64,000 nucleotides of DNA, taken from positions 1 to 64,000 of the forward strand of contig JAAPAO010000007.1 of assembly GCA_013115145.1 (NCBI GenBank), in the 5' to 3' direction. Made by a program: the position numbers and the translations under genes. This DNA is from Perkinsus chesapeaki ATCC PRA-425. Its lineage: Eukaryota > Protista > Perkinsozoa. The notes under the pieces are model-generated. The model did not search any database. It saw only the letters and a list, made by a program, of their open reading frames with translations, and was not told the origin of the DNA. Below, piece by piece: positions 17,172 to 64,000 of the stretch (the stretch's first letter is position 1; the number at the start of each line of letters is the position of its first letter).

Positions 17172-17243
17172 CGCCTTGGATTCTTCCTTAATATCGGCTA
17201 TTTCAGTTTGTCGTGTTGTGGTTGTTGTTGTCGTTGTTTCAAT

Positions 17244-25955: not shown

Positions 25956-26195
25956 CTTGGCCACGCTCGGCGGTTGTCGTGGGACAGTTGATTGTGTCAA
26001 GGAGGCTGCACAAACTGGATAAGGAGAAGCCCAAGCGACTGAAGCGACGGGTGGCCGAGGGGGAGGAGGAGAACCATCCCTCAGAGGAACAGACTCCCCA
26101 CTGACATGTGTTATGGTGTGATTCTCGCGTTTCTGTCAGCACTAGACGATTGAGTTGACGGTGGTCGCTGTGTGGTTGTCAGTTGGTTCATTTCC

Positions 26196-27712: not shown

Positions 27713-27857
27713 GGCATGTGCGTGCGGCGATCGTGTTCTAGTCGTTTCGATTCCCCTCTCAGTTGTTGCGTTGGCCTCATCCATCTCCTGTTCGTGTTAG
27801 TTTTTTCTTGTAACGGTTAAATTGATATCGTCCCCTCACTGTGTTATCGAATAAGGT

Positions 27858-33477: not shown

Positions 33478-34081
33478 TTATGTCCATAGCCGAGTCTCCT
33501 CGCGTTCTGTTGACTCCGATGTGACGTTTACGGTGCCATTATTGTACAGGGAATGCTCGATCAAATGGGCCTCGAATCTAGCTTGTAGATCAGCTAGACG
33601 CTGTTCGAGTTCACGTATTCGTGACTGAGGAGAATAAAGATAACATACTGAACCATTCGCACTTATTGATGCCAAGAAAGTACGCTCCAAAAACGAGTCC
33701 TACCTGTTGTTCCTGTACTGCACCAGTCAAAATCGCAATCAAGTCCTGATATAAGACGGAAAGGGTGTCTTGCCCTTCAGATCGATGGACCACTTCGGGC
33801 AATAACCGTTCCAGATCCTGAGAGTAAAACGTCAACAAATTGGGACCACAAGACAACGCGCAAGACCATTATGAGCTAGTACAAGTACTCACCTGTGCTA
33901 TAAAGCCAAATCGCCGCCGATCAGCCTCTGCGCCGGTTTGAGAGTCAAGTTTGAATGCGACCGGTCGTAGCTCCCTGAGCAGTTGCGAAGCCGGGCCATC
34001 ACGGTCAGCCTCCGCCTCTCCACTAGTTGGCTCGAGAGCAACAGAGAGCGGTGTAATATCTCGCTTCAAACGACGATCACT
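33478..34081 (-). other. Intramolecular chaperone autoprocessing (peptidase S74) domain plus coiled coil
   Basis: Spliced LTTT-SDRRLKRDITPL...LLRELRPVAFKL...RFGFIAQ|DLERLLPEVV...LSVLYQDLIAILTGAVQEQQ|SRIRELEQRLADLQ matches the S74 signature (S-D-x-R-L-K, L.PV.F, GFIAQE, V.Y..L..L..A.QE). The catalytic Ser codon is at 34079-34081. Confidence 0.9.
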
Positions 34082-37000
34082 TGTTGTTAATGCAACGTCA
34101 GCTGTCCAGGTACCTGAATGAACATTGAAGACATGTTGCCGATCCTAAGCGTTATGAAGCGGTTCTGCACGCCATCGAGCCAGAATTGCTACTCGCGGCT
34201 TACCGTGTAAGGTTCCCGTGCCTGCTTCAGTCGCTGATATGACTCGAGTAGAGCCAGCGTACAACTGGAAGCTACCCAAGCGGACGAAGCTTCGAACCGA
34301 AAGGCTGCTTCCGAATGTCGCGAAGTCGACGACAGACAGCTTGCTGCCTAGCCGCGCGAATGATCGCAACGACAGAGATGATCCAAAGCTAGCCACTTGT
34401 ATGACGGAGAGCTGATTAGCGTACGTATTGGTGAGCACGCTGAGGGCTGACCCCAGATGTGCCGAATCCCGTAGTGATAAGACGCTACCCAACCGTGCGA
34501 AGCTCCTCATTGAGACGGAGCTGCCGAAATTCGCTGCGTCGAGAACAGACAGGCTACCGCTAACTCTCGTGTACGATAGTGCCGAAAGGCTACTGCCTAG
34601 TTGGGCAACACCTGCAGCTGATACTTGATTCGCATAAGTAGCATCAGATATGGTCAACGTAGAACCAGCATCAATATGTCCCAGGACAGAGATACTGCTT
34701 CCCAAGCGAGCGAATGATCTTAGAGAGAGGGTGCTTCCGAAGCTGGCAAAGTTGATCAACGATGTAACACTTCCCAGTCGAGCGAATGATCGCAGAGATA
34801 TAGAAGACCCAAAGTTGACCAAGTCAAGAGCTGATACCTTGTTAACATAGGCGTAGTCTGTTGTACTCTGCACCGAGCCGCAAGTGAGCGAGCTCGTGAC
34901 TGACAGGCTGCTTCCTACCCTCGCGAGCGAACGCAAGGAGAGCGAGCTGCCGAAGGCCGTCATGTCATAGACAGAGAGTCTGCTGCCAAGGCGGCCGAAG
35001 CTTCTCAAAGAGAGTGCCGATGCGAAGTTTACCAAGTCCAGAATGGACACCTTATTCACATAAGCATAGGCCGTCGTGCTCTGTACTCCACCGAAGTGGG
35101 TCACACCTTGGACACTCAAACTGCTTCCGAGGCGAGAGAATGATCGAAGGGACAGCGAGCTAGCAAATGACGCAGTGTCATAAACTGACAAGATGCTGCC
35201 AAGACGGCCGAAGCTTCTTAATGAAAGGGACGAGCCCATCACGACTTGGTCGATAACTGATACCCTGTTAAGATACTGCGAGCCAATAACGCTCTGTGTA
35301 TCACCAAGGTTGATAAGATTAGCCACCGAAAGGCCACTACCCAGCCGACAGAAGCCTCTCAGAGATAAAGAGCTGCCAAGCACCGCTTGGTCAAATGAAG
35401 ACAATCTCGACCCCAAGCGCGAGAATGACCGGAGCGATAGGGAAGAGCCGAAATGTATTGCATCAAGTGCGGATACCTTATTGACGTAGGCATACCCTAC
35501 CGTACTCTGAACATCACCAAGGTGCATCACACCAGTTACAGAGAGACCGCTTCCCAAACGAGCAAGGCTCCTCATCGATAGCGAGCTACTAATAACAGTA
35601 TAGTCAAGAGCGGTCAACTTCGAACCAAGTCTTGCATATGACCTCAGCGACATAGAAGAGCCGAAGTTAGCTAAGTTGAGGACCGAGAACCGATTGACCA
35701 CAGTGTTATCAGTAACAGATAATGTGGAGCCAGCGTAAACCCCGCTAGCGGCCGAGACGCTACTGCCCAGACGAGCTGCACTGCGGAGAGATAGTGTACT
35801 TCCAAAAGTGACGAAGTCGACAATAGAAACTCGGCTTCCAAGCCTTCCGAAGGATCTCAGAGAGAGGCTCGAAGTGAAGCAGATCTTGTCAAGAACAGAG
35901 ACCTTATTGAGGTAAGCGTATCCCACTGTGCTCTGAGTAGAGCCTGCCGTGATACCATCGAAGACTGATATCGTGCTGCCGAGTCGCATGAAAGTTCTCA
36001 ATGAAAGAGAGCTTCCGAAGGATGTGCAGTCGAAGACTGATTGTTTGCTTCCTAGCCTTGCGAAGGATCGCAGTGACAAAGAAGAACCGAAAACACCTCC
36101 GTCAAGGATTGATAGCTTGTTAGCGAAGGCGACACCGATAGCGCTCGTTACTCCGCCCATGCGGGTAACACCGGCTATAGATATTGCGCTACCTAGCCTC
36201 GCTATTGCCCTCATGGAGACGCTACTACCGAAGGCCATGAAGTCGAGTACGGAGAGCCGACTGCCAAGCCGCCCGAAGGACCGGACAGACAGTGATGAGC
36301 CGAAGTTGACGGAGTCAAGAGCAGATAACTTATTAGCGAACTGACTGCCGAGAATACTTAGTGATGATCCGAGCCTTGTCTCCGACAGCACCGACACCCC
36401 ACTCCCGAGCCTCGATACACTACGGAGCGATAACGCGCTTCCGAACGATGCATAATCCGCTACGCTAAGCTTCGATGAGAGGCGGGCAAAGGATCGCAGC
36501 GATAGGGAGGAGCCGAAGTTGCCGAAGTTGAGAACAGAAATACGGTTCAGAAAGCTGTGGCCAATAAGACTGATTGGGCCACCGAAGTGGGATGTGCCTG
36601 TGACCGAAATGCCACTGCCCAGGCGAGCTTGACCTCGCAGAGACAGAGAGCTACCAAGCGCAGCATAGTCTAGTATGGACGACTTGCTTCCGAGACGAGC
36701 GAATGACCTCAGGGACAGCGAAGAACCAAAGTTAACATTGTCGTAGACACTTAGGGACTGGCCGTATTGAGCCGTGTTGCCGACGCTATGGGTAGAGCCA
36801 GTGACGACTGTAGTACCGAAGACGGATATAGTGCTGCCCAACCGAACGAAACTTCTGACCGATAGGCTGCTGCTCAGCTCCACGACATCGAGCGCTGATA
36901 GCTTGCTACCCAGCCTTGCAAACGAGCGTAGCGAGAGCGATGAGCCGAAGTTGGCAGTGTCAATGACGGATAGTCTATTGCTACAGAAGTTGCCGAGCAC

Positions 37001-40000
37001 ACTCTGAGTTCCTGTAATGCGAGCTACACCGGTCACCGAGATGCCGCTGCCAAGGCGAGCAATGCTCCTCAGCGATAAACTGCTACCCAAGCCAACGAAG
37101 TCCACCACGGAGAGCCGAGATCCAAGCCTTGCGAAGCTACGCAAAGAAAGCGAGGAACCGAAGGTAGCTATATCATTAACAGAAAGCTTAGTCACAAAGG
37201 CGTAGTCGGCAACGCTGTGATAAGATCCCAAGAATGCCGGAGAAGCGATGGAAACACCGCTGCCTTGCCGAGTGAAGCTGCGCAGAGACAGAGAGCTACC
37301 TAGTGCCACGTAATCGAGGCCGCTAAGCTTACTGCCCAGCCTAGCGAAAGACCTCAGAGATAACGATGAGGCGAATTGGCACTCCGATGAAACGGACAGG
37401 GTCGTCAACCTCGTTGTCGAGTATGCCCGAATCGTACTGCCGAATTGAGTCGTTGAGCCGACACTCAAGGAGCTTCCCAAACGAGCAAATGAGCGCAGAG
37501 ACAACGAGCTGCCAAAAGCACTGAAATCGGTGATGGAGGCTGTGCTACCGAGTCTCGCGAATGATCTTAATGACAACGATGAGCTGAAGTGGGCGGAGCC
37601 AGCAGCCGATACGGCGTTCAGGTAAGTAGCACTGCCTATACTCTGAATGGTACCAAAGCGAGTTACACCAGCAACAGATAGTGAGCTCCCGAGGCGCCCG
37701 AACGCTCTCAAAGAAAGGCTGCTGCCAAAGTTGCTCATGTCGAATATGCTGGCTGTTGACCCAAGCCTGGCGAATGAGCGCAGTGACATAGTCGAGCCGA
37801 AGTTAACGTGGTCCAGGGCAGAAACCTTGTTCACATAGGTGTAGTCGGTGATGCTTTGCACGCCGCCCATGTGGAGCGTACCAGCAACTGACAAGCCGCT
37901 ACCTAGCCTTGCGATGGCTCTTAGGGAGAGAGAGCTTCCGAAGCTAGCGGAATCCAGGGTCGAGAATGTAGCACCGACTCGCATGAAAGACAGAACGGAC
38001 GCTGAGCTACCGGCCCGGACGAGATCATTAGCACTGAGTTTTTGGAAGTACGCCGAGCCTTGTGTGCTAAGGTAGCTTCCAAGACAAACCTCACTGGCGA
38101 CCGAAGCAGTGCTGCCTAGCCGAGAGAAGCCCCTTAAAGATAGAGAGCTTCCCAGAGCAACGTAGTCAATACAACTTGCCGTGCTACCCAGTCGACTGAA
38201 GCTTCTCAGAGACAGGCTAGAGCCGAAACTAGTGTGGTCCAGAATCGACAACCTATTACCTGTCTTGACTCGTCCCAAAACCGACACGGAACTTGCAAGC
38301 CGGCCAAATGCCCTGAGGCTAAGACTGCTTCCAAAGACCGTGTAGTCTAGCACGCTGACTTTGCTAGCGAGTCTGGTGAAGCTCCTGATTGATAGAGAGC
38401 TACCCATATGTGCGAACTTCACCACCGAAAGGCTACCACCAGCTCGAGCAGCGCCCAGTAAGGAAGCGCACGATCCCAGACGCGCAAAGGAGCGTAACGA
38501 CAGCGTTGAGCCATATGATGTTTGCGCCAGAAGCGAGAGGCTCGAGCCGAGCTTGGTAGCCGCACCAACTGACAGACCTGACCCAAGGCGGGACATCGAT
38601 CTCATTGAGACAGAACTGCCGAGCACAGCGTAGTCCAAAACGCTGGTTGCCCCACCGAACCTAGCGAAGCTCCTCAGTGAGAGGCTCGAGCTGAAGCTTC
38701 CGCTCTGAACGATAGAAAGTGCACCACCAAATCTTGCGTTGGACACGGCGCTAATGGCTCCTCCAGCGTGAGCAGTGCCGACCAGACTCAGCGATGAGCC
38801 GAAGCGAGCGAAGGACCGGAGGGAGACCGAACTCGCCAGGATAGCCTGGTCGATCACAGATAGTTGGTAGAGACTGCCAAGCCTGACAAGACCAAGAACG
38901 GACACACCGCTCCCAATTCTTGCAAAAGACCTTAAGGAGAGTGAGCTGCCAAGTTCAGTCTGCTCAAGAACAGAAATAGCACCGGCAACTCTGGCGAACG
39001 ACCTCAAGGACAAGGATGATCCGAACGCTGTACAGTCGACGACGCTGGCACTACTGCCAAGGCGGGCGAAGCTCCTCAAGGATAGACTGCTACCGAAGTT
39101 GCCGTAGTCCACGAGGCTAACTTTGCCGGAGAGTAGAGCGAAGCTCCTGATAGACAGGGTGGAAGCAAGGTTTGCGAGATTAACTGCGCTGAGAGCACCA
39201 CCATAGTGAGCGGACCCGAGAGCTGACAAAGAACTGCCGAGCCTCGCTGCACTTCTGAGTGATAGACTGCTGCCAAAGGCAACGGCATCAAGAACACTGA
39301 GTGTAGAGCCCACGCGGAGGAAAGACAGCGCACTTGCCGCAGAGCCAACATGTGCTGCTGAGAGAACACTCACAGAGCTCCCTAATCTCGCAAATGATCG
39401 CAGAGATAAGGCCGACCCGAAAGAAGAAAGACCAAGAACTGATTGCCTCGCACCAAGGGTAGCGCTGCCAAGAAGGCTCAAGCTACTACCTAACCTCTGA
39501 GACGATCTGAGGCTTACTGAACTTCCACAAACAGCATAGTCGAGAGCGGATAGCTTGCTACCGAGGCGAGCGAAAGATCTCAGAGAAAGACTGCTGCCGA
39601 AAGAAGCACTGCCGAGGACGGAAGACGAAGAGCCAAGTAATGTATTTCCCAGGACTGAGATACCGCTTCCTAGTCTCGCGAAACCTCTCAGCGAGAGGGA
39701 ACTGCCGAGCTCCGCCACACCGACTACAGAGATAGCAAGTCGAGAGCCGAAGCGAGCAACCCCTTCAACCGAGAGAGAACTACCAACACGCACAGCTGCT
39801 CGTATAGAGAGGCTGCTTCCAAACGTTGTATAGTCCATAACCGTTAGTTTGCTGCCTAGCCTGGCGAAGCTTCTAAGGCTCAATGAGGATCCGAAGTGAC
39901 CCTGCTGGAGCACAGATAGTTCCGAACCATAACGGGCGGAACCGAGAGCGGAGAGACTAGAGCCAGCAGCCAGCGGACTGAAGACGGAGATAGACGAGCC

Positions 40001-43000
40001 CAGGCGAGCAAAGCTTCTGAACGACAGAGAGCTACCAATAACGGCATAACCTAGGACCGACATCTTGGAGCTGAGGCGAGCCAGCGAGCGGATCGAGAGA
40101 GAAGAACCGAAGTTCACCTCGCCGATTGCGCTCAAAGTGCTACCGAATCTCGCACAGCCGATGGCTGACACTCTCGAACCAATAGAGGCAGAGGCTACCG
40201 TAGACACGGAACTACCGATTCTGGCGAAATTCCTCAGAGAGAGCGAGCTGCCGAATTCTATCGCGTCAAGAACGGAAAGCTTGCTACCTAGCCTGGCGAA
40301 GCTCCTCAAGGAGAGCGACGACGCGAAGGCGGTGGAGGCTATAATAGAAAGCTTGTAGGCGGAACCAAGGCGGACCAAACCAGCAACTGAAAGGCCACTG
40401 CCGATGCGCTGGAATGATCTCAAGGAAAGCGAGCTGCCGACCACAGCATAGTTGAAGACCGAGGCCGAACTGCCGCAGCGCGCGAACGATCGCAATGAGA
40501 GGCTTGAGCCGAGGCTAGCCTGCTCGATAGCAGAGAGTCGACCACCAAACATGGCATTTCCAACTGCTGATACAGCCCCACCGATACGAGCAACGCTACG
40601 AAGAGACAGTGAGCTGCCGAGTGTGGCGAAATCCAGCACGGTGATATGGCCCGATAGACGAGCGAACGACCTCAGCGATAGAGACGACCCAAAGGAGGCA
40701 TGCGACACGGTAGACAGGGATGCCCCGGTGTTAAGGAGGCCAACCAGAGAAGCTGAGCTTCCCAGTCGTGCTACTGTGCGTAGGGATAACGAACTGCCGA
40801 TCTGGGTATAGCTCAGAGCACTCACCTTGTCCGACAGGCGAGCAAAGCTCCTCAGTGAGAGTGATGAACCAATGTTGACAACTCCGATAATTGATGCAGA
40901 ACCACCTATAGGAGCATTTCCGATAGCTGAGACTGAGCTACCCAGCCTAGCGAACGATCTCAGGGAAAGAGCTGAGCTGAAAGACGTTGCGTCAATGGCA
41001 GATACTGAGCTTGCTATACGGACCTTGGACACCACGGACAACGAGCTACCGAGACGAAGATAGGTCCTCAGCGAGAGAGAGCTACCGAGAGCGACCATAT
41101 CAAGAGCACTCGCGCGACTTCCCAGTCTGGCAAATGACCTCAGGGAAAGGCTGGAGCCAAAACTGGTTGAAGAAACCGCACTCAGTGTCGAGCCGACTCT
41201 GGCAAAGCCGCATGTGCTGAGCGTTGCACCCGAATAAATAGAGCTGACAATGCTGACAGCTGATCCAAACCGAGCAAAGCTCCTCATAGACACCGAGCTA
41301 CCAATCGTAACTTGGTCTATAACCGACAAGCCGTATACACTGCCTAGACGAGTGAGGCCTAGCACAGAGAGTCCACTTCCGAGCCGGGCAGAGTTACGCA
41401 GAGACAGAGAGCTGCCAAGAGTAGCATAGTCAACGATAGATGACTTGCTACCGAGACGAGCAAATGACCTCATAGACAAGCTGGATCCGAATGCCACTGC
41501 ATCCAGAGTAGACAGAGTGCCTCCAACCCGGCCGAAGGATAAAGCAGAAGCTGCGCTACCGAGAGTAACAGAGCCATAGGCTGAAAGACTGCTTCCAAGC
41601 CGAGCGAATGCGCGGAGCGAAAGCGAGCTTCCGAAAGCGCACTCACCAACCACAGACAATGCGCCGCCAACCTTTGCAGCAGAAAGAGCACTGATAGAGC
41701 TACCAAGGCGAGCTAATCCTCGCAGTGATAGAGAGGATGCCAGCAAAGTGCAATCCAATGAAGACACTGCTGCCGACATACGCGCAAATGATAGGGCTGA
41801 CAACTCTCCACCCATTCGAGTATCTCCAAGAAGACTTACACCACTACCGAGGCGGGCGAATGATCTTAGGGAGAGACTGGAGCCGAACGAACCCACCGCA
41901 AGCACTGATAAGGATGAAGCAAGTCGACAATCACCAGCAGCGCTAAGGGAGCTTCCAAAACGAGAAGATGCTCTCAAGCTGAGAGTGCTTCCTAGAGTTG
42001 TGAAATCTAGGACAGAGAGCTTGCCTCCCAATCTCGCAAACGATCGAAGACTCAGACTGCTGCCGAACTCACAATGATCCACCACGCTCATGGCGGAGCC
42101 AAAAACGGCGGTACCAACAGCCGAGATCGAACTGCCAAGACGAGCGAAAGACCTTAAAGACAGGCCGCTTGCAAGTTCCGCGGTATCGATCACACTTAGT
42201 GACTGTCTGGAACCGAAACGCGCCAGTCCGTCAACCGACAGGGTGCTACCAAGGCGGACGAAGGAGCGTATAGACAAGGAACTACCTATCATGGCAGTGT
42301 CATAGACGCTAAGCTTGCTGCCAAGACGAGAGAATGACCTCAAAGACAGTGATGAACCAAAGGTCGTTTGGCTTAATGTAGACAAGTCAGCGCCATAGCG
42401 TGTCGTGCTCGATGCCGACAGTACGCTGCCCAACCGGACTCCACTAGTAGTGGATAACGAGCTCCCGAGGCGTGCAAAGCTCGCCAATGACAAGGAGCTT
42501 CCAAACGAGGAGCGATCGAGGACTGAAACGTACCCCGACAACCGTGCAAAGCTACGTAGCGACAGGCTGGAACCGAAGTCGGCACAACCAACAGCACTCA
42601 TAGCCGATCCGAGATAGCCGCTTGAAGCAGTAGATAATGAGCTACCCAACCTTGCTGCTGATCTTAAGGACAAGCAGCTGCCAAAGGCCGCCATGTCGAC
42701 GACAGAAGCCTTGCCTCCGAGACGAGTGAAGGATCGAAGTGATAGAGATGAACCAAACAGTACACCTCCCAGGACCGAAGCAGTGCTGCCTAGCCGAGCT
42801 AGGGAGACGGCTGACAGTTGGCCACCAGTTCTCGCAGACCCGGCTACCGAAAGACTACTTCCAAGCCGAGCAAAGCTCCGTAGTGATAGTGAACTAGAGA
42901 AGTGAGAAGAGCTTATGACTGACAAGGAGTAGATAGAGCCAATGCGTGCAAGTCCTGATAGCGATGCCGAGCTACCAACACGGAAGAAGCTTCGGACGGA

Positions 43001-52000: not shown

Positions 52001-55000
52001 ACGGCTGGTCGCCAGAACGGAAGCTCCAGAACCTAGCCTTGCGAAACTTCTAAGTGATAGAGACGAGGCAAAGCTAGACGAGTCCAGAGCTGAGAGGGCA
52101 CCAGAGAATTTACTGAATCCAAGGGCAGACACGGTGTCGCCGGTAGTGATACTTGACCTCACGCTTAGAGCAGAGCCGAGACGCGATGCACTTCGAAGAG
52201 ACAACGAGCTGCTTAGAAGGACAGAGTCAAATGACGACGTCAGTCCTCCAAGTCTGGCGAATGAACGAAGGGAGAGCGATGAGCCGAAAGCTGAAGATCC
52301 CAAAATTGAGACCCTGTCGCCGAGAGTGGCCGCAGAGTATACCGACATCACGCTGCCAATACGGGAGAACCCTCTCAATGACAGCGAAGAGCCTAAAGCG
52401 CTCATTCCCAAGGCAGACAATGAAGACCCCCAAAGAGATGATCCATAGGCCGACACTGCGCTGCCAAACCGTGCAGTGACACGGATCGATATGGAACTAC
52501 CGAGAGCAACACAGTCGAGTATAGACGCCTTGCCTGAAAGTCTTGCAAATGATCGGAGCGATAGGGTAGAACCGAACTCAGTCTGGGCAAGGACCGACAA
52601 AGAGTCGCCGAAGGATGCTGATCCTAGAACAGAAATCGAAGAAGCACCGACGGTAGATCCTGTTACAGATAGAGAACTGCCGAGCCTGGCAAAGGACCTC
52701 AGCGACAAGCCAGAAGCAAGATTGCAGGTGTCTAGCAGCGAAATACCGTACACAGAACCGAACCTTGCTAATCCCGTTACAGACAGGGAGCTCCCAAGGC
52801 GAGCAACACCCCGCAAGCTTAGCGATGAAGCGAGTGCAGCTGCATCCATCACACTCAGCTTGCTGCCCATACGAGCGAACGACCTCAAGGATAGAGAAGA
52901 CCCGAAGTGGGTGTGGCTCAAGACCGTTACGGCTCCGCTTACTGCCGCTTGAGAAAGGATCGATACTGAGCTGCCTAAGCGCACCAATGCCCGAACGGAA
53001 AGGCTAGATCCAAGACTCGCGAAGTCAGTCATGCTTAGCTTACTGCCCAGACGTGAGAATGATCTAAGCGAGAGCGAAGAACCAAAGGATGTACAATCGG
53101 CTACAGAGCATGACGAAGCCATGCGGGCCAGACCGAGGGCTGACAGCGAACCCATGACTCGAGCATCAGACTTCACCGAAATTCCGCTGCCGAGTCGGGC
53201 TATTGTACGGAGAGACAAGCTACTGCCTAACGACACGTAGTCGAGCACAGACAATGTGCCAGAGAGCCTTGCAAATGACCGCAGGGAGAGAGATGAGCCA
53301 AACGACACCTGCTCGAGAACAGACTGTTGGCCACCGATGCGCGCTAGGTTACGAATAGAGAGGGACGAGCCGACGTTAGCGAACGACGCCACAGATATCG
53401 ATGACGCTGCTCTAGCCATACCCAAGATAGACATGGAACTTCCGAGCCTGGCCATGCACCGCAATGACAGGGAACTAGCGAAGGAAACCGACTCGGTCAC
53501 TGAGAGCTTACTTCCGAACCGAGCAAATGACCGAAGTGATAACGAGGAACCTACCTCTGATGTACCGACAACAGAGCAGGCTGATCCCAAGCTTGCGGCT
53601 CCATAGGTAGACAAGGAAGATCCGAGCCGAGCGAAGCTTCGCAAGGAAAGAGAACTGGCGAAGTTCGTAGCAGCCAAGACAGAGATTCTATATAGCGATG
53701 CGAGCCTTGTGAGACCAGCAACTGATAGACCGCTTCCAAGCCTTGCTGCACCGCGGAGAGATAGTTGGCTGCCGAGGAGGACGTAATCAACAGTAGACAG
53801 AGAGCTGCCACAGCGAGTGAAGCTACGAACGGAACAGCAAGAGCCTAGACTACTGAAGTCTAGCGCTGATATATGCCCACCGATTCGGGTTCGGTCCAGT
53901 ATCGAGACGGACGACCCAATCCTACAGCGCCCAAGGACGGATGTGTAGGAGCCCACGCGAGCAGCACATCTCAAACTAAGGGACGAGCCAAGATTGGCAT
54001 AGTCCAGAGCAGTGAGCTTCGAACCAAGGCGGGCAAAGGATCTTAGCGACAAGGTGGAACCAAACTCAGCCGCTTCAAGTGCAGAGACAGCCGAAGCCAA
54101 CCTTGTGGCGCCTAATATCGAGAGGTCGGAGCCTAGTCTTGCGGAGCCTCGAAGAGACAAGCTGCTGCCAAAGTGCACATAGTCTAGAACACTCGCCTTG
54201 CTCGAAAGACGAGCAAAGCTTCTCAACGATAATGAGCTGCCCAATGCGAAGCTGTCTAGCAGCGAGCACGAGCTGCCCAGTCTAGCGCTGCTCATGAGCG
54301 AAGCTGACGAGCCTAACCGTGTTACCGCTCTCAATGACAGAGACGATCCGAGAGATGTCGAGTCGATGACACTAAGGTGATAGACAGAACCAACTCGAGC
54401 CAAGCCTAGGATCGATACACCACTTCCACAGCGAATGAAGTTTCTGACGGAGAGAGCGCTGCCAATCTGTATGAAGTCTAGGACAGATGCCTTACTGCCG
54501 AACCGACCGAAGGATCGTACTGACAAGGAGGAGCTGAAGTGGGCGAAGCTGAGGGCCGAGATGGAGGCTCCTAGCCTGGCGAGCTCCTGGATTGAGCACG
54601 CGCTACCTATAACACCTCCACCAACCGTTGAGATACTGCTACCAAGACGAGCAAAGTTGCGCAAGGAGAGAGAACTACCGAAAGCAGCAGCGTCAAGAAC
54701 AGACACTTTGCCGCAAATACGAGCAAAGCTCCTCAGTGATAGGGTACTACCGAATTCGGCCTTACCAAGAACCGTGAGTGCGTCGCCGAACTTCGCTACC
54801 GAAATGACTGACAATCCGGAGCTGACCCTTACCGTTTCCTTGATAGATATGGCGCTTCCTAACCTAGCGAAGGATCGTAGACTGAGGGAACTCGCTAGTG
54901 CCGCTTGATCCGTCAGCGACACTTTGCTTCCGAGTCTTGAGAAGGACCGCAGTGAGAGGGAAGAGCCGAACGAAGTCGAACCGAATGCGGACAAGACATC

Positions 55001-58000
55001 ACCGAATCTGGCGAAGCTCTGGGAAGAGACGGAGCTGCCGAAGTGTGCAGGAGCGACCACAGAGATACCGCTGCCAAGCCGAGCAAAGCTGTGCAAAGAC
55101 AACGACGACCCAAGATGAGTGTAACCCACAACCGAAAGCTCGAGAATAGAGCCGAACCGTAGGACGCCTGTGACACTCATTGCGGAGCCTATCCGGGCAA
55201 CAGCTCGAACACTCAAAGTAGAACCTAGTTGCACGTAGTCCATGACGCTTATATATGAGCCCATTCTTCCGAATGACCGCAATGATAGAGAGGAGCCGAG
55301 ATAGACTTCCTGTACTGTCGATACCATCTCTCCGATACGAGCTGTTGAGAAAACGCTGAGCGAGCTACCAAGCCGAGAGAAGGAGCGCATCGATAGAGTA
55401 GAGCCCAGATGAGCGAAGTCAAGGACTGTTGTTCGACTGCCGAGACGAGCAAAGCTCCGTAGAGACAGAGAGCTGCTAAAGGTGGCACGCTGAAGAACCG
55501 ATACACAGGAGCCAGCTCGCGCGAAGCTTCGCAGGGAGAGTGAGCTACCGAAGTGCGCAGTGTCGACGATGCTCACAGAAGCGCCGAGGCGAACAGTGCT
55601 TACTGCTGATAGACCGCTACCAAGGCGGAGAGCAGTCCTCAGGGACAGCGATGAGCCCAACTGCACGTAGTCGATGATGGAAGCCGCGGAACCAAGCAAG
55701 GCGAACGACCGAATAGAAAGCGAAGATCCGAGTTGTGTGGCGTCCACAACCGATAGTGTTGAGGCAAATCTCACACCATTAGTAACGGAGAGAGCGCCCT
55801 TGATCTTAGTCACCCCAACCACAGACACGCTGCTGCCAAACCTGGCCATAGCGCGGAGAGACATGGATGAGCCGATAACAGTGTAGTCCAGGAAGGATGC
55901 CGCGCCGGAAAGTCTCGAGAAAGACCGAATAGAGATGGAGCTGCCGAATGTGGCCGATGCAATGACAGACACTTTATAGACAGAACCTATGCGGGCCAGT
56001 CCAGTAACCGAGAGGCCTGAGCCAAGACGGGCCATAGCGCGAAGGGACAAGGAAGAGCCGAGTCCAGTGCATCCGAGAGTGGATAGAGCATCAGCCAAAT
56101 GGGTTTGTCCTACCACAGAGCAAGAGCTGCCCAGTCTTGTGAAGGATCGGAGCGACAAAGAGCTGCTGAAAGCAACACTATCAGACACAGAAAGGACACC
56201 GCCCAGTCTCGAGAAAGAACGGAGTGATAGAGATGAGCCAAAGTTCGCTGCACCCAGGGCCGACACCGCATCACCGAGGCGCAGTTGGCCAATGACGGAC
56301 GCCGTTGAAGAGAGCCGCGCTACACTTGCCACTGATATCCCGCTACCCAGGCGAGCCATGGACCTCACCGAAAGCGAGCTGCTGAAGGTGGTAGAGTCTA
56401 TCACAGAGAGCTTATACACCGAACCTACTCTAGCGAGGCCTGTAACCGAGAGGCCTGAGCCAAGCCGAGCTACACTTCTCAGTGACAACGAGCTACTAAT
56501 AAGCACGAAGTCTAACACAGACTGTGAGCTTCCGAGCCTCGCGAAGGACCGGAGTGACAAGGAGGAGCCGAAAGTAGCGAAGCTTGTGACAGAGGTCTTG
56601 CTGCCCATCCGGGAGAACGCTCGCAGCGACAGACTGCTGCCGAGGTTCACATAGTCCAGGATAGAACTCTTCGACCCGAGCCTTGCGAAAGAGCGTAGGG
56701 AAAGAGAGCTACCGAAGTGAGCTGCACCAACAACAGAGACTGCGGCACCGACATTCGCTGAGGCCAACGATGAGACAGCGCTGCCGAGTCGAGCTGTACT
56801 TCGAAGGGACAATGAACTACCGAGCGTAGTGAAATCGAGGATAGTAGCTTTACTGCCAAGTCTCGCAAAGCTGCGGAGTGACAGCGAAGATCCCACAGTG
56901 GTCGCGCTGATGGCAGATAAGCTGGAGCCAATGCTAGCAGCCCCGTACGCAGATACCGAGGATCCCAGCCGCAGGAAAGTCCGAAGGGACAGTGAGCTAG
57001 CAAGCGTCGTGTAGTCGGTAGCGGACACCTTGCTGCCTAGTCTAACGAATGACCGTAAAGATAGCGATGATCCGAACAGGCAAGCTCCGACTGTGCTGAC
57101 CAGCGAGCCACACGAAGCTGTGGCAAAAGCAGAGACTGATGACCCGAGACGAGTGAAGGCTCGTAGGGACAGACCTGACCCGAAACTGACGGAGTCTAGA
57201 GCCGACAAAGATTCTCCAACCCTAGCCAAGCCAAGTACTGAAGCAGAGCTACCGCCTCTCGCCACACCACGCAATGAAAGCGAGCTTCCCAAGGTTGTGT
57301 AGTCCAAGATCGACAGCTTCGAACCCAAACGAGCAAAGCTTCGAAGAGAAAGGGACGAGCCGAATTGAACAAGTCCAAGCACCGACTGAGCAGAACCAAG
57401 CCTTGCGTAGGACAAGGTAGACAAAGAGTCTGATAGTACTGTCTGTGAGACAACCGATATACTGCTGCCTAGCCTGGCACAAGCTCTCAATGAGAGCGAT
57501 GAGGCCAGTGCAACGTTGTCAATAACGGAGAGCTTGTAACAGGATCCCACCCTCAGCAATCCTAATACGGAGGCGCCACTGCCCAATCGAGAAACGGATC
57601 GGAGTGAGAGAGAGCTGCCCAGTTCAGCTTCGCTGAGCACGCTGAGCTTCGAGCCAAGTCTGGCGAAAGATCTGACCGATAGAGAGGAGCCGAAATGTGC
57701 CGCATCGAGAGCTGTCAGCGATTTGCAGTAAGTTCGACCGAGAACAGAAAGTGATGATGATGCTGTAACTGGACCGACAACACTGATTGAGCTACCAAGG
57801 CGGGCAAAGCTCCTCAGCGAGAGGGCACTACCGAGGTTTACCCCATCGAGGACAGATAGCCTTCCAGCAATCCTTTGGCTTGAACGGAGAGACAAAGTGC
57901 TAGCAAAGTTGACATAGTCTACAATGCTGAGCCTGCTGCCAAACCTAGCGAAGCTTCTCAGAGATAGGGAGCTACCAAAGCTGGACTGTCCGAGTACAGA

Positions 58001-61000
58001 AACTCGGGATCCCACTACGGCCGCTGTCAGAGATGAAATTGAACTACCAAGTCTTGCCAAGCCACGAAGCGAAAGGGAGCTGGCCAGAGCGACCTCAGAT
58101 AGCACAGATGTCTTGCTTCCGCAACGGGCAAAAGAACGCAGAGATAACGACGAGGCCAGTGCCGAGCTAGCAATGACGGACAGCTTGTAGCACGAGCCGC
58201 ACCGCACCAACCCGGTAACAGAGAGACCACTTCCGAGCCTAGCAACATTGCGCAGCGACAAAGAGCTGCCGAGGTGGCTGAAGTCAAGAATAGAGCTCGA
58301 GGAGCCCAGTCTGGCAAACGACCTCAATGACAGTGATGATCCGAAATCAACGACGTCAAGGACCGACAGAGCAGATCCGAAGGTTGAAGAGCCTAGTACG
58401 GACATGCTTGAGCCGCTACGGACGAATGTTCGCACAGAAAGGGAACTGCCCAGTTGGGTAAAGTCCACCACTGACAGCTTCGAGCCAAGCCGAGCGAAGC
58501 TGCGCAGTGAGAGCGACGATCCGAAATCAGCTTGTCCCAGCACCGATATCGAGCTGCTTGCTGTAAGACCTCCCAAAATGGAGATGGCGCTGCCGAAGCG
58601 GGCGAAACCTCGTAATGAGATAGAACTTCCAACGGTGACGTAACCCAGCACCGATATCTTATACACGGAGCCCAAGCGCTGTAAGCCAGCAACAGATAAG
58701 CTGCTACCGAACCGGACAGCAGCTCTCACAGAAAGACTCGACCCAAAGGTAGCATAGTCTAGAACCGACAACTTGCTGCTGCATCGAGCGAAGGAGCGCA
58801 GGGAAAGCGAAGAGCCAAAGTTGGCAAAGCTTAGGGCAGATACCGAAGCGCCTAGCCTAGCCAATCCGAGGGCACTCGCTTGGCTACCGATTCTAACGCA
58901 TTCGGCAACCGAGGCCCTACTGCTGAGCCTGGCAAAGCTGCGGAGGCTCAATGAGCTGCCTATATCGACTGCATCTAGTATGCTGGCCTTACTGCCAAGC
59001 CTTGCGAAAGAGCGCAACGATAAAGACGAGCCATAGTGTAGGGCGCCTAATACAGATAGTCGATCACCAAAGTCTGCGAGCCCCAGAGAACTCATGCTCC
59101 CGGCGAGCTTAAACTCAGATGTCACGGAGAGTACACTACCAAGGCGAGCAAATGAGCGCATCGAAAGAGAGCTGCCGAAGTTGACACTGTCTAGGATACT
59201 GACATCTCCTGCGATTCGGGCAAAGGCGCGTAGAGACAACGAGGATGCGAGGCCAGTAGAAGCAATCACCGACAAGCTGTATACTGATCCGATGCGAGCG
59301 AGGCCCGTGACAGATAAGCCACTACCAAATCGACCAACGCTCCTGAGTGACAAGCTGCTGCCAAGAGCCACCTCGCTGAATACAGAAAGCTTGCTGCCTA
59401 GACGGCCGAGGGAGCGGAGAGATAGAGAGCTGCCGAAGCTGCTAGCGCCCAGCACTGTACAGCTGCTCCCGACGTTGATCGCACATAAAGCGGAGCACGC
59501 CGATCCTAGTCTAGAATATGCTCGTATGGAAATAGAACTGCCGAGAGAGCTGTAGTCCAAGGTGCTCATTTTGCTGCTGAAACGAGCAAACGACCTCACC
59601 GAAAGAGACGAACCAAGACTCACGGAGTCCAGTGACGACAGAGTATCATGCAGGTGCGTGCGACCATATACCGAAACCGTGCTGCCCAGCCTGGCAAATG
59701 AACGAAGAGACAGCCCGCTGGCGAACGAGGCTCCGGCGATTACTGATAGCTGGTAAACTGAGCCGACCCGAGCTAGACTAGCGACAGAGATGCCAGAACC
59801 AAGTCGAGCCATTCCACGAATTGAGAGAGTGCTACCCAGAGTCACTGCATCAAAGCTGCTGAGCTTACCGCCAAAGCGACCGAAAGAGCGCAGTGACAAG
59901 GACGATCCAAAGTGTGCCTGGCCAACTGTTGATAGGCTTGAGCCGAAGTTACCATGGCCAAGCATGCTAACCGAACTGCCCATCAAAGCGGAGCTCGTGA
60001 CAGAAATGGTGCTGCCTAATCTGGAGAATGCTCGTAATGTTAGAGAGCTTCCAAATGATGCTCCAGCAATAACCGATAGTTTATACACCGAACCTACGCG
60101 AGCCAAGCCAACTGCGGATATGCCGCTACCCAATCGAGCAAAGGTCCGGAGCGATAGACTGGACCCGAGGCTAGCGGCATCAAGGAGCGTCATCTTGCTC
60201 GCAAGACGAGCGAACGACCTGAGCGAGAGGGACGAACCGAAGCCGGCTGATCCAATAACAGAGAGCTGCGACCCGACCTGACAGCCGCCAGTAGCAGATA
60301 TGGCGCTGCCGATACGGATGAGAGATCTGACTGACAGCGAGCTGCCGAAGGCAACATAATCACAGACAGACGCAGCTGCACCCATTCTCGCAAAGGATCG
60401 CAGCGAGATCGAGGAGCCGAATATAGCATAGTCTAGGACGGAGCACTTGGAACCTGCTCGAGCGAAAGACCTCAGGGACAAGGAGCTACCAAGGGCAGTG
60501 CTGCCGATAACCGAGATTACTCCGCCCACACCAGCACGACCGACCGCGGAGATACTGCTGCCCAATCGAGCAACGTTGCGAAGAGAGAGTGAGCTACCAA
60601 GAGTAACGTAGTCGAGAATCGACGCGTCCGAGCCACACCTTGCGAACGACCGAAGTGATAGCGAGGAACCCATACTAGTTGCTGCAATAATAGATAGCTT
60701 ATACACAGACCCAACTCGAGCAATGCCGAAGACCGAGCAACCGCTACCTAATCGACTTGCTCCGCGAAGGGATAACGTGCTGCCCAAGACTGCATAGTCT
60801 AGGACGCTGTACTTGCTACCCAGCCGGGCAAAGGACCTCAAAGATAGCGAGGAGCCGAATGAAGTAACTCCGACTGCACTGAGTGAGCTACCGACCCGTG
60901 TAGATCCATATATAGATGCAGAGCTTCCAAACCTTGAGACTGCCCTCAAGGATAGCGAACTCCCGAGGTTGATATAGTCTAGAACAGTCAGCTTGCTACC

Positions 61001-64000
61001 ACAGCGCGCGAAGGAACGAATAGATACCGAGCTTGCAAGGTTAGCAAATTCAAGGCTGCTCACTGCTCCGGCGAACCGCGCAACAGAGGCAACGCTCATG
61101 GCGCTACCACAGCGTGCAACTGCCCTGATGGAAAGGGAGCTGCTGAGGGTAGTGCACGCTATAACCGAGAGCTTGTAAACAGAGCCAACTCGTGCTAGAC
61201 CAAGAACGGAAATACCACTTCCTAACCGAGACGCTCCTCTGAGCGACAGTGTACTTCCAAGAGTGCTGAAGTCTAGTAGCGTCATCTTGGACCCTAAGCG
61301 GGCGAAAGTACGCAGTGAGACAGAAGACGCTAGCGTGCTGCCAGCAAGCACCGATATGGCACCTGCTACCCTAACGAAGGATGCCACCGACACGCTGCTA
61401 CCAAACCGGGAGAGACTCCTCACAGACAGAGCACTTCCAAAGTTTATCAAGTCCAAAGCAGACAGCTTCGATCCGAGACGGGCATAACTTCTCAGTGATA
61501 AGCTGCTCCCGAGGCTTGCCATGCCTAGCACGGAGGCTGCACTAGAAAGCCGAGCAAAGTTGCGCAATGAGAGAGAGCTTCCCAAATGGGTAGATCCTAT
61601 TGCCGAGAGGGCAGCGCCAAGGCGGCATAAACCAACTGCAGAAATGCCACTTCCCATTCTGACGCAGGACCGGATCGACATAGCGCTACCGAAGGCGACG
61701 CAGTCCAAGACGGACATCTTCCCGGAGAGCCTAGCAGCCGAACGGATCGAGAGTGAAGACCCGAAGGAGGCATCAGCGATAACCGAGAGCTTGTAGAGCG
61801 AACCGATCCGCGTTAGGCCATGAACCGATACACCGCTACCAAACCTAGCTACGCCACGTAGGGACAGTGAGCTGCCAAGTAGAGCATGTTCGAGGACAGT
61901 TGCGGAGCTTCCTAGACGCGTGAAAGATCGCAGCGAAAGACTCGATCCGAAGTGAGCTTGCCCAACTGTGGAGAGACAGGCTCCCAAATTGGAGGAACTC
62001 TTCGCCGACAGGGTGCTGCCGAATCTGGCTACCGATCTGCAAGAAAGACTGGAACCTAGAGAAAGGTTATCCAACACGCTCAGCTTAGATGCCAGCCTGG
62101 CGAATGACCTAAGTGAGATCGTAGAACCCAGGCTGCTCAATGATACGACAGAAAGGCTGGAGCCGGTACGCAGCAGGCCAAGTAACGAGAGGTCACAGCC
62201 CATGCGAGTGAACTGCCGAACTGATAGAGAACTGCCCAAGTGAGTGAAGCCGATGGTGGATATCTTATAGATTGACCCTATCCTGGCGAGACCAAGGACA
62301 GAAACACCACTACCTAGTCGAGTCATCGATCTTACAGACAGGCTGCTACCCAGGACGGCAAAGTCGACCAGAGTCAAGTCGCTTCCTAAGCGTGCGAAAG
62401 ACCTCAGCGAAAGGGCGGAGCCGAAGTGGACGCTATCAAAGACTGATACTTGGCTACCAAAGCTTGCGGCGGAAAAAGCGGACATGACGCTACCAAACCT
62501 TGCCGCCGACCTCAAAGAAAGCGAGCTTGCCAGGCCAACAAAATCGAAGACCGAATAGCAGCTGCCGAACCTAGCATAGCTCCGCACAGATAGGCTGCTG
62601 CCAAGGTGAACTTCATCAAGTACAGAGAGAGCCGCTCCAACGCGAGACTGGGAGATAATCGACAGTCCGCTGCCGAGCCTGATAAAGCTCCTCAAAGACA
62701 AGCTGCTACCGATGGCAGTAGAATCGAGAACAGTTAGCGACGAACTGAATCGCGCGAAAGACCTCAGCGAGAGCGAGGACCCGAAGCTGCTTTGACCGAC
62801 CAGCGACATGGATGACCCCATGTAGCAGAACGATCGGAGAGAGAGCGTGCTACCGAATTCTGCCGAATCTAGTATAGACGTCTTGCTGCCGAGCCTAGCA
62901 AACGACCTCAAAGAGAGGCTCGAACCGAAGAGGCCTCCAGCGATTACAGACAATTTATAAACCGAGCCGATTCGGGCAAGACCAGTTACAGATAAGCCAC
63001 TCCCGAAGCGAGCAACCGCGTGTAGTGACAACGAGCTCCCAAGTCCACAAGCGTCCAATACAGTCAAGCTCGCACCGAGTTGAGTGGAAGATAGAGCAGA
63101 GAGTGTGCTGCCAAATCGACTGAATGACCTCAGAGACAGCGAACTGGCTAGCTGAGAGGATGCAATCACCGACAGCTTGTAAACGGAGCCAACGCGTGCG
63201 AGGCCGTAAGCACTGATACCGCTACCGAATCGAGCTACGCTCCTCAGAGACAAGGAGCTGCCTAAGCCCACTGTGGCGAGGACAGTTAGGCTGGAGCCTA
63301 GTCGAGTCGAACCAAGAACAGACTGGGAACTACCAAACCTCATGAAGCTCCTGAGAGAGAGCGAGCTTCCAAGCAAAGCACCATCCAAGGCAGACAGACC
63401 GCTACCGAGGAAGCCACTGAGTGCTGCAGAGAGCGAGCTACCAGCTCTACAGAGGGACCGTACTGATAGAGAGCTACCAAGCTGCGCGTACCCAATGACC
63501 GAAGCCTTGGAGCCTAGGCGAGCAAAGGATCGGAGAGACAGAGAAGACCCGAATGCGGTACCGTCCAGAACGCTAGTGGACGAGCCCAGACGTGCAGCTG
63601 ATGCCGCGGAAAGGGTGCTTCCAAAACGCACGAGGGAACGCAAGGACAGCGAGCTGCCACAGGTTACGTGGTCTAGAACGGTAAGAGACGAACCTACTCT
63701 TGCAAGACCAACGGTAGACACCGCCGATCCGAGTCGAGCTATAGCCCGCAAGGACAAGGAGCTCCCGAGAGTGGTGAAGTCAAGAACGGATAGCTTGGAG
63801 CCAAACCTTGCGAGTGACCGAAGCGATAACGATGACCCACAAGTAGTTGCATCCAGAACGCTCATGGTGCCAGACAAGACGCTATCGCCGAACACCGATA
63901 CTGAGCTTCCTAGGCGGGCAAACGAGCGCAAAGATAAAGTGCTACCGAAATTGGTCATGCCAATCACGGAGAGTTCCGCGAGTGACTCAACTCGGAGCAC
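33478..64000 (-). CDS. Giant (>10,000 aa) Ser/Leu/Gly-rich 12-aa-repeat protein with C-terminal peptidase S74 intramolecular chaperone domain; 5' end lies beyond the window
   Basis: Exons are >64000-34204, 34113-33893, 33817-33704 and 33624-33478, all with GT-AG introns and in frame, giving about 10,090 codons in the window. The ORF is uninterrupted for 29.8 kb. Confidence 0.92.
34260..64000 (-). repeat. Coding repeat array of about 820 degenerate 36-bp (12-aa) units
   Basis: Consensus G-S-x-L-S-[LVI]-x-[SGD]-x-x-x-[LFV]. GSSLSLRSFARL recurs every 2-4 units. Confidence 0.9.

Follow-up and report, generated by a model that had tools for sequence, protein, structure and literature searches.

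The DNA analyzed here (the window, 64,000 nucleotides) comprises bases 1-64000 of contig JAAPAO010000007.1 of the clam parasite Perkinsus chesapeaki. Its minus strand carries a nuclear gene, confirmed as real, whose encoded protein is longer than 10,000 aa. The raw open reading frame at 34145-64000 counts 9,951 codons up to the first stop in frame and remains open where the window ends. Over 34205-64000, a stretch of 29.8 kb, the frame of the repeat exon contains no stop, whereas the two other frames have 450 and 408. The gene model amounts to 10,092 aa within the window, and its 5' end and N-terminus lie past base 64000. Exon 1 (34204..64000, minus strand like all features below) consists of 9,932 full codons of a 12-aa repeat and the first base of a split Gly codon, in agreement with the at least 9,930 aa of Ser/Gly/Leu/Arg repeat given in a preliminary description of this DNA. 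The exon begins beyond the window and ends at 34204 with ...GTGTLH(G) and a GT donor.

Three short GT-AG introns are predicted to link the repeat exon to a C-terminus of 159 aa. Predicted intron 1 (34114..34203, 90 nt, GTAAGC...TCAG) holds the in-frame TAG at 34147-34145 that ends the raw ORF. Exon 2 (33893..34113) encodes the linker TWTADVALTT and then the N-terminal three quarters of a Peptidase_S74 domain, with the motif S-D-R-R-L-K at 34081-34064 (Ser codon 34081-34079, Lys codon 34066-34064) and ...RRFGFIAQ at its 3' end. Predicted intron 2 (33818..33892, 75 nt, GTGAGT...CTCAG) interrupts GFIAQ|DLERLLPEVV, and exon 3 (33704..33817) supplies the remaining S74 core (DLERLLPEVV...YQDLIAILTGAVQEQQ) together with the first part of a C-terminal helix. 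After predicted intron 3 (33625..33703, 79 nt, GTAGGA...CCTCAG), which shifts the reading frame, exon 4 (33478..33624) encodes the coiled-coil helix (RIRELEQRLADLQARFEAHL) and a short acidic tail, and ends with the stop TAA at 33480-33478, the gene limit that had been proposed.

The splice model is supported by collinear alignment with unspliced homologs and transcripts, which also bears out the earlier joining of the repeat to the S74 exons. Exons 2-4 are collinear with uninterrupted homologs, including the Trinity transcript P0006 and the Tara metatranscriptome protein P0018. Removal of intron 1 restores an L-H-G-x-W linker that is contiguous in homologs, and the GFIAQ|DLERLLPEVV segment is contiguous in all homologs aligned. 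As read from the sequence, the a/d heptad spacing is unbroken over the junction of exons 3 and 4, across which the hydrophobic 3-4-3-4 pattern spans ~5 heptads. The exons were searched separately and were joined by X for the tree only.

The repeat unit is 12 aa long (GSSLSLRSFARL or GSKLSVLDxxxL) and is arranged in modules of 24, 36, 38 and 47 aa. Exon 1 is composed mainly of S (25%), L (15%), G (11%), A (10%), R (7.6%) and V (7.6%). The autocorrelation of residues is highest at lag 24 (0.36), lag 12 (0.31) and lag 36 (0.31) against a background of ~0.09, and is at background level at lag 18 (0.117). Splitting at S-[LVIM]-R gave modules of 24 aa (n=118), 36 aa (n=63), 38 aa (n=35), 48 aa (n=33) and 47 aa (n=16). 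The last ~1,200 aa of exon 1 form a regular 71-aa super-repeat, in which a 47-aa module with Y-x-N-K-V-S is followed by a 24-aa module. This C-terminal sub-array (34313..37939, exon 1 residues 8688-9896) holds ~17 copies, and most shifted copies are 54-57% identical (alignment A1). None of the lengths 38, 47 and 71 aa is divisible by 6. The Ser and Arg positions of the repeat are invariant, and every sixth position is aliphatic, as in the hexapeptide stalks that precede other S74 domains.

This regularity exists in the protein only. Tandem Repeats Finder detected no tandem repeats in the DNA, no exact DNA repeat exceeds 27 nt, and 31 identical copies of 14 aa use all six codons each of Ser, Leu and Arg, with 30% of third codon positions shared. 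Since synonymous sites are randomized between identical repeat copies, this is an old gene under selection, and a satellite or assembly artifact is ruled out. It is scarcely credible that the array represents a functionless relic, or a non-coding repeat left open by chance. Such a reading could draw on the search of two very large protein collections, which met no near-identical protein for the giant ORF, although the product of a neighboring gene is present there. However, 9,932 codons are free of stops where each other frame has more than 400, the amino-acid pattern has been kept while synonymous sites were randomized, the catalytic motif is intact, and homologs are transcribed in other species. 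The search likewise found no giant relatives of 5.4-17k aa, and ORFs of the window looked up by exact sequence had no entry in the collection. With no protein matching the giant ORF in two collections of this size, gene catalogs evidently miss such genes.

Exon 2 alone matched Peptidase_S74 (PF13884) with 41.5 bits (cut-off 22, E=1.6e-10) over profile positions 1-47 of 58, and the rest of the profile region falls in exon 3. The S74 assignment made from the letters of the sequence was thus upheld by the profile search, and the SDRRLK...GFIAQ domain and the coiled coil lie where they had been placed. Ser and Lys of the intact S-D-R-R-L-K motif are five residues apart (S-D-x-x-x-K). All 16 homologs compared share, without variation, the S, D and K of this motif and also P-V, G-F-x-A, P and D. 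The core motifs follow in order (R-P-V, G-F-I-A-Q/D-E, P, D-L-I-A) and precede the heptad-spaced C-terminal helix (alignments A2 and A3). The segment that begins with the Ser of SDRRLK and runs up to the stop has 63+38+48 = 149 aa, the length previously stated, and the predicted cleavage site follows the last repeat after only ~36 residues of non-repeat sequence. A search of PDB sequences with exon 2 alone gave no match, and the family profile matched the solved S74 chains 6f45 (1.7e-9), 8jov, T5 8hqz and MYRF 7dc3. Exons 2-4 end in an acidic tail and contain no hydrophobic segment, so that, as had been claimed, no membrane segment is seen in them after the S74 domain.

These features are shared with phage fibers such as the K1F endosialidase, T5 pb1 and the S16 long tail fiber, which likewise have a C-terminal S74 domain with S-D-x-x-x-K, GF[IL]A and a terminal helix, a repetitive β-rich shaft upstream and no membrane anchor after S74. 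Unlike these, the Perkinsus gene is cellular and eukaryotic, with predicted spliceosomal introns and host neighbors. Its shaft is about 7 times longer than T5 pb1 (1,396 aa), its repeat is a highly regular 12-aa unit without a Pfam match, and no enzymatic or receptor-binding head is seen in the part within the window. The eukaryotic MYRF and Dictyostelium MrfA likewise are nuclear genes with an S74/ICA domain carrying a Ser-Lys dyad, and have a trimerizing coiled coil and a hexapeptide-type β-helical stalk upstream (PMC8326128), to which the coiled coil and the putative β-helical repeat of the Perkinsus protein would correspond. MyRF is cut at P586-S587 by its Ser-Lys dyad only as a trimer, which is driven by the coiled coil, and its stalk consists of hexapeptide repeats (PMC8326128). 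The Perkinsus protein differs in having no TM segment after S74 and no Ndt80-type domain in the 9,932 aa within the window (Pfam was run on pieces of 980 aa and 1,000 aa, and the remainder of the 9,932 aa is the same repeat). Its stalk has thousands of residues rather than a few turns, and its product would be a fiber rather than a released transcription factor. The part of the protein within the window does not fit a MYRF-type membrane-bound transcription factor, with an Ndt80-like domain upstream and a TM segment downstream.

To characterize the fold of the shaft, 426 aa of the repeat were modeled with AF2. The model is all-β with short strands separated by 2-residue turns, and a regular three-strand set recurs ~every 24 residues, three times per 71-aa super-repeat, at moderate confidence (pLDDT 63, pTM 0.60). 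Foldseek lists for this model were dominated by β-helix and solenoid proteins, none of them significant in PDB or BFVD (best PDB E 0.67). The model of the homolog P0005 (pLDDT 54, low), which contains a helix at 442-508, had the MyRF ICA 7dc3 as its top match (probability 1.0, target TM 0.57, E=0.015, not significant), followed by the T5 and endoNF chaperones, including 4uw8 and 3gw6. The β-solenoid suggested earlier is thus in line with the modeled pattern, and its trimeric state would follow from the kinship with known S74 proteins. Known triple β-helices (T4 gp5 needle, endoNF stalk) and single-chain β-solenoids (bactofilin, the LpxA-type left-handed helix, bacterial giant adhesins) have similarly short strands, 2-residue turns and an aliphatic residue at every sixth position. 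The Perkinsus repeat has no significant sequence or fold match to either group, and differs in its period of 12/24 rather than 8 or 18, its invariant Ser and Arg positions and its extreme net charge.

Because every sixth position is aliphatic, we favor a triple β-helix in which Gly/Ser-rich and Arg-bearing layers would alternate. Alternatively, each chain could form on its own a single-stranded β-solenoid with ~24 residues per coil, as the monomer model suggests and an intertwined triple helix would not have. The S74 domain would then either tie three rods together at their C-termini or act as a self-removing pro-peptide, yielding a single rod or a three-armed bundle of ~0.2 μm instead of an intertwined fiber. 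The three-strand set that recurs ~every 24 residues in the AF2 monomer and the autocorrelation maximum at lag 24 speak for this arrangement, as does the near absence of contact between the ICA domain of MyRF and its stalk (PMC8326128). However, all structure predictions were of monomers, which cannot yield an intertwined trimer and are no fair test. Single-chain coils would moreover stack the invariant Arg directly every 4.8 Å at a net charge of +592 per chain, and all characterized S74 clients are trimeric β-helical stalks. We therefore consider independent single-chain rods unlikely.

The two arrangements differ in length. After the predicted cleavage, the shaft would have at least 9,943 aa and about 1 MDa per chain, with a pI of 11.6. 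The 0.2-0.4 μm estimated in the preliminary description holds for one chain per rung, whereas the part within the window would reach ~0.8 μm as a fully intertwined triple β-helix with one hexad per 4.8 Å layer. The 'tinsel' of the Perkinsus anterior flagellum is ~1.3 μm long (PMC7398310). A chain of ~16,000 aa would span 1.3 μm at 0.8 Å per residue, and the ORF continues beyond the window.

The genes in the flanking 33 kb encode PFK, ribosomal protein S21e, a Rieske/FAD oxidoreductase, an epimerase and an adaptor subunit, and all have introns. This setting bears on the question whether the gene could be the fiber gene of an integrated polinton-like or giant virus, serving the virus and not the cell. 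Polinton-like viruses of protists have modular, S74-capped fibers of up to 3.9k aa that are widespread (PMC12220804), related S74 domains are encoded on 85 viral contigs, and the best BFVD fold matches of the repeat model were Pyramimonas orientalis virus proteins (E about 0.01, probability 0.91, not significant). The fibers of polinton-like viruses, virophages and giant viruses are likewise large and modular, with a C-terminal chaperone-of-endosialidase domain, and are thought to be trimeric (PMC12220804). However, they do not exceed about 3.9k aa and are built of laminin-G, collagen, adenovirus-fiber or phage tail repeat domains. In none of the 80 viral S74 loci fetched does the Ser/Leu/Arg repeat occur, and viral S74 domains fall outside the clade of the window gene. 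No viral hallmark gene was seen in the 33-kb flank within the window; judged on this flank, the gene lies in neither a viral genome nor an integrated element. In addition, the gene itself has three predicted spliceosomal introns and at 30 kb would alone be about the size of a whole polinton-like virus genome (14-40 kb, PMC12220804). A viral origin of this kind is very improbable, and a viral island was rejected in view of the intron-rich host neighbors, the repeat-free viral loci and the separate S74 clade.

The combination of repeat and S74 domain recurs in dinoflagellates, chromerids and marine metatranscriptomes, where it amounts to 882 representative clusters and 389 metagenome contigs. 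Contig ends truncate many of these repeat ORFs. Where the 3' end of a metagenome repeat ORF lay inside its contig, 14/21 terminated in S74, their tails measuring 137-307 aa, which makes this layout the norm within the family. The S74 domains of the repeat proteins form one clade (99/92) apart from 64 viral rows, and that of the window gene nests in a 54-row clade of repeat proteins (99/89). This architecture defines a large uncharacterized family of dinoflagellates, chromerids and perkinsids, with an array of the G-S-S-L-S-[LV]-R-S-F-x-R-L type, an L-H-G-x-W linker, a C-terminal S74 domain and a coiled coil, all present in the window gene. The search for dinoflagellate homologs suggested earlier was thereby successful. 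The accompanying statement that no characterized eukaryotic system of this architecture is known stands insofar as we found no paper on such cellular proteins when searching the literature on S74/endosialidase chaperones in alveolates or flagellar hairs, although the layout is not unique to Perkinsus. S74-capped fibers associated with eukaryotes are, however, not new in themselves, as those of polinton-like viruses have already been described (PMC12220804).

The location of the product was assessed from its composition and its relatives. The shaft contains one N-x-S/T sequon, where about 30 are expected, and D-x-S/T occurs at 58 in 217 (p=6e-10). The corresponding family-wide values are 7% and 19% (p=3e-16). 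Constraints on residue positions within the repeat could account for part of this depletion. The homolog L157 begins with a signal-peptide-like MRPLRWLFAVSSVLV, a Vitrella relative has a sub-threshold TSP1-like domain, and partner domains of the VWA/VIT type occur in relatives; Pfam found no domain in the N-terminal parts of L157 and L123. Conversely, the protein could be an intracellular cytoskeletal or scaffold polymer with a bactofilin-like β-helix. The distant relatives P0068, P0081 and P0071 have summed Pfam Bactofilin scores of 40-80 bits, P0071 bears that name in one source, the shaft is very basic, and any signal peptide of the Perkinsus protein would lie past the window with its N-terminus. 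However, no single stretch of these relatives passes alone, and pieces of the window repeat matched neither the Bactofilin nor the Hexapep profile even at E<=1. The sequon avoidance, the N-terminus of L157 and the TSP1 and VWA/VIT partners point outside the cell, and known S74 clients are extracellular fibers, with the exception of MYRF-type factors cleaved at the ER membrane. An intracellular polymer is thus quite improbable. The repeat lacks the PF04519 match of bactofilins as well as the profile match and 18-residue coil period of Hexapep-type left-handed β-helices (LpxA/LpxD), and these names, given to homologs by some sources, were rejected as composition-driven labels. The two repeat pieces of 980 aa and 1,000 aa gave only chance-like sub-threshold Pfam hits, GMPPB_C (22 bits, cut-off 39) and NOP5NT.

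Taken together, we hold it probable, with some reserve, that the gene encodes the subunit of a very long homotrimeric β-helical fiber, probably secreted, which is folded by its S74 domain and then released from it. The C-terminal S74 domain would act as an intramolecular chaperone that gathers three nascent chains, with the terminal helix as a trimeric coiled coil, and the S74 trimer would nucleate folding of the upstream repeat into a β-helical shaft. Because the MyRF ICA barely contacts its stalk, it is an extrapolation to assume that ~10,000 residues are templated in this way. Cleavage by the Ser-Lys dyad of S-D-R-R-L-K would fall immediately before the Ser (...ALTT|SDRRLK), freeing a 149-aa acidic cap from a strongly basic shaft of roughly 0.2-0.8 μm for the part within the window. 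The fiber would probably be made in the secretory pathway and lie outside the cell, where a wall fibril, a surface adhesin and a flagellar hair are candidates. More specifically, though rather doubtfully, the family may supply the subunits for an extracellular filament, such as thin flagellar hairs or wall fibrils, in perkinsids, dinoflagellates and chromerids, a structure to which no protein had been assigned before.

To our knowledge, S74 auto-chaperones occur in phage and virus fibers, and in eukaryotic cells essentially only in MYRF-type transcription factors. Here, the phage-fiber device caps a megadalton-scale cellular gene, which represents hundreds of uncharacterized relatives in ecologically dominant algae and parasites. 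Should the proposed fiber be real, a eukaryotic cell would here for the first time employ the phage auto-chaperone route to a triple β-helix for structural purposes, and the fiber would be an extreme test of C-terminal templating in folding about 10,000 residues of β-helix. It would then represent a new class of eukaryotic fiber and provide a molecular handle on myzozoan surface or flagellar structures that have no known protein.

The giant gene lies on the minus strand and runs on past base 64000; read from that edge of the window, its frame stays open until a TAG at 34147-34145. Over 64000-34205 (-) there is no stop in 9,932 codons, against 450 and 408 stops in the other two frames of the same strand. 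The product is dominated by Ser (25%), Leu (15%), Gly (11%), Ala (10%), Arg (7.6%) and Val (7.6%). Residue autocorrelation of the repeat was 0.36 at lag 24 and 0.31 at both lag 12 and lag 36, compared with ~0.09 elsewhere. The stop-free frame and these lags bear out the giant regular repeat claimed in the preliminary description. Splitting at S-[LVIM]-R gave modules of 24 (n = 118), 36 (n = 63), 38 (n = 35), 48 (n = 33) and 47 (n = 16) aa. The 24-aa module has the consensus GSSLSLRSFARL-GSKLSVLDYAxL, with Arg7, Ser5 and Ser2 invariant, Arg11 conserved at 97%, and an aliphatic residue at positions 6, 12, 18 and 24, which gives a hydrophobic period of six residues. A regular 71-aa super-repeat (47 + 24) makes up the last ~1,200 residues of the repeat. 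The AT skew of the plus strand is ~+0.3 all along the gene. Nine antisense ORFs (153-380 aa) also lie within it at 42942-60281 (+), e.g. 51306-52448, and are most simply explained as by-products of the biased, repetitive codon pattern.

Tandem Repeats Finder detected no DNA repeat in the giant exon, and exact DNA repeats within its 29.8 kb do not exceed 27 nt. The 14-residue peptide GSSLSLRSFARLGS occurs in 31 identical copies, in which all six Ser, Leu and Arg codons are used and third codon positions agree at only 30%. This indicates that the peptide pattern is under selection, while the silent sites have drifted to saturation. With the peptide pattern kept over saturated silent sites, the exon can be neither a young satellite nor a decaying pseudogene, and an assembly artefact is ruled out too. 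Neither the 1.84-billion representative library nor the 5.8-billion-cluster collection yielded a protein near-identical to the giant ORF, and the product of a neighbouring gene on the same contig was present where the giant protein had no such match. The giant gene may be absent from public annotation.

The C-terminal cap is encoded by three further exons. Predicted intron 1 (90 nt, -) has a GTAAGC donor after ...GTGTLH and a TCAG acceptor, and its removal keeps the frame and rebuilds L-H-G-T-W. Exon 2 (34113-33893, -) encodes TWTADVALTT-SDRRLK...RRFGFIAQ. It is followed by predicted intron 2 (75 nt, -; GTGAGT...CAG) and exon 3 (33817-33704, -; DLERLLPEVV...YQDLIAILTGAVQEQQ), and predicted intron 3 (79 nt, -) separates the latter from exon 4 (33624-33478, -), which encodes a helix, a short acidic tail and the TAA. 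Exons 2-4 are collinear with homologues whose same sequence is uninterrupted, no gap interrupts the L-H-G-x-W linker or GF[IL]A[QD]E in those homologues, and the final helix keeps its 3-4-3-4 spacing of hydrophobic residues over the exon 3/4 junction. The splice model is supported by these collinear exons, contiguous motifs and continuous helix spacing, and with it the earlier proposals that the repeat is spliced to an SDRRLK...GFIAQ domain and that a coiled coil follows. In all, 10,092 aa are encoded in the window; from the SDRRLK Ser to the stop, the exons give a computed length of 149 aa, as had been predicted. No hydrophobic segment was found C-terminal to the S74 domain in the encoded sequence up to the stop, in agreement with the claim that no TM segment follows it.

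Exon 2 alone matched Peptidase_S74 (PF13884) at 41.5 bits in a Pfam scan (cut-off 22), which confirmed the domain assignment made from the sequence alone. An alignment of 16 homologues revealed invariant S, D and K of SDxxxK, P-V of RPV, G-F-x-A, one Pro and one Asp. Among solved S74 chains, the family profile matched the phage long tail fibre 6f45 (1.7e-9), 8jov, the T5 L-shaped fibre 8hqz and MYRF 7dc3. The AF2 model of P0005, a homologue from the representative protein searches, was weak (pLDDT 54); its best structural match was the MyRF ICA domain (probability 1.0, target TM 0.57), and the T5 fibre with its chaperone and the endoNF chaperone were other top matches. In MyRF, ICA cleaves at Pro586-Ser587 via a Ser-Lys dyad in the trimer only, trimerisation is driven by a C-terminal coiled coil, and upstream of ICA the stalk has the form of a triangular prism built of hexapeptide repeats (PMC8326128).

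For the shaft, AF2 was run on monomers only, using 426 aa of the super-repeat with shifted repeat copies as alignment. The model was all-beta (pLDDT 63, pTM 0.60), with one long and two short strands recurring approximately every 24 residues. Foldseek searches of this model against PDB and BFVD returned no significant match; the non-significant lists of both were topped by beta-solenoids (in PDB, EtpA, curli CsgA and tailspikes; in BFVD, proteins of Pyramimonas orientalis virus). If the chain winds singly in 24-residue coils, the 9,932 aa seen would measure 0.20 um; in a triple beta-helix whose 4.8 A layers each take up one hexad, they would reach 0.79 um. Each shaft chain has a computed mass of ~1,005 kDa, a pI of 11.6 and a net charge of +592, and the cap is computed to be acidic. 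In a C3 triple helix, Gly/Ser hexads and Arg-bearing hexads could form alternating layers, which would place the Arg layers 9.6 A apart.

A 1,000-aa repeat piece used as query retrieved 65 relatives, 550-1,750 aa in length, and PF13884 lies at the end of many. An unrestricted search yielded 882 representative clusters (241 at E <= 1e-10), with top lengths of 3,620, 3,172 and 2,783 aa; no relatives of 5.4-17k aa are on record in the protein collection searched. The dinoflagellate homologues sought following the preliminary description were found in Symbiodinium, Cladocopium, Durusdinium and others, the named sources also including Apocalathium, Yihiella, Chromera, Vitrella and, as a distant one, Tetraselmis. 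Repeat-S74 members are present in a Trinity assembly and a Tara metatranscriptome, and the fused architecture is thus transcribed. A metagenome scan added 389 confirmed relatives (identity 40-47%). Most of their ORFs run off the contig at both ends, one filling a 10.1-kb contig and another reaching 4,499 aa, so very long family members are probably common. Where repeat ORFs finish inside their contig, S74 is the terminal domain in 14 of 21. Two metagenome homologues change frame relative to the main repeat ORF, one where the repeat continues (L157:87-9010) and one at the S74 domain (L162:3282), which suggests 3'-proximal introns like those of Perkinsus.

Polinton-like viruses are known to have S74-capped fibres, which reach 3.9k aa (PMC12220804), and related S74 domains were encoded on 85 viral contigs. 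The repeat was absent from all 80 viral S74 loci fetched. A tree was built from 132 copies of this short domain, with an arbitrary root and viral rows picked by similarity; its 99/92 branch has all 66 repeat-attached domains, the window's included, on one side, and 64/64 viral rows plus the long-branched non-viral P0081 and P0145 on the other. These two relatives were also matched by the repeat query. At the sequence level, the tree shows the repeat-attached S74 domains as one coherent lineage and is silent on the direction of transfer. P0081, P0145 and a third relative, P0071, are long and Asn/Ile/Lys-rich, with another beta-helical repeat and summed Bactofilin scores (Pfam scan of two of the three); in two of them the C-terminus is S74-like and groups with viral S74 rows, outside the myzozoan clade. 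Their origin may be another protist lineage or giant viruses.

The 33 kb before the giant gene encode PFK, ribosomal protein S21e, a Rieske/FAD oxidoreductase, an epimerase, an adaptor subunit and exonucleases. Introns interrupt most of these genes. A viral island was rejected, since the flanking genes are those of the host and most have introns. At 24001-28000, amid intron-rich host genes, the GC skew of the plus strand is up to +0.27 and +0.16. Two tandem 3'-5' exonuclease ORFs, 17208-19112 and 19625-21574 (+), share ~75% identity, and the second is 99% identical to Perkinsus chesapeaki FOL47_009726, whose contig (GCA_013115145.1, JAAPAO010000007.1; 166,478 bp) is numbered like the window. 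That public model (991 aa) joins residues 1-368 (17931-19034) to 361-991 (19673-21571) and is probably a fusion of two paralogous genes.

In the repeat, Asn stands two residues before Ser/Thr in 1 of 100 cases (~30 expected), compared with 58 of 217 for Asp (p = 6e-10). The bias recurs across homologues, environmental ones included (7% for Asn vs 19% for Asp, p = 3e-16), and this scarcity of N-x-S/T may reflect avoidance of N-glycosylation. The family's only clear N-terminus, that of L157, is signal-peptide-like, and some relatives carry TSP1-like (below Pfam cut-offs) or VWA/VIT domains. Judged from sequence, the sequon bias, the signal-like start and the partner domains hint at a place for the giant protein in the secretory route. 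The anterior flagellum of Perkinsus bears a unilateral tinsel of ~1.3 um (PMC7398310). The giant gene is best regarded as encoding a giant, cellular and new form of the S74-capped fibre, with putative trimeric assembly and role, and no larger member has so far been seen in the large, unnamed myzozoan family to which it belongs. Candidates for the Perkinsus structures that its product may form include the cell wall and the anterior-flagellum tinsel.
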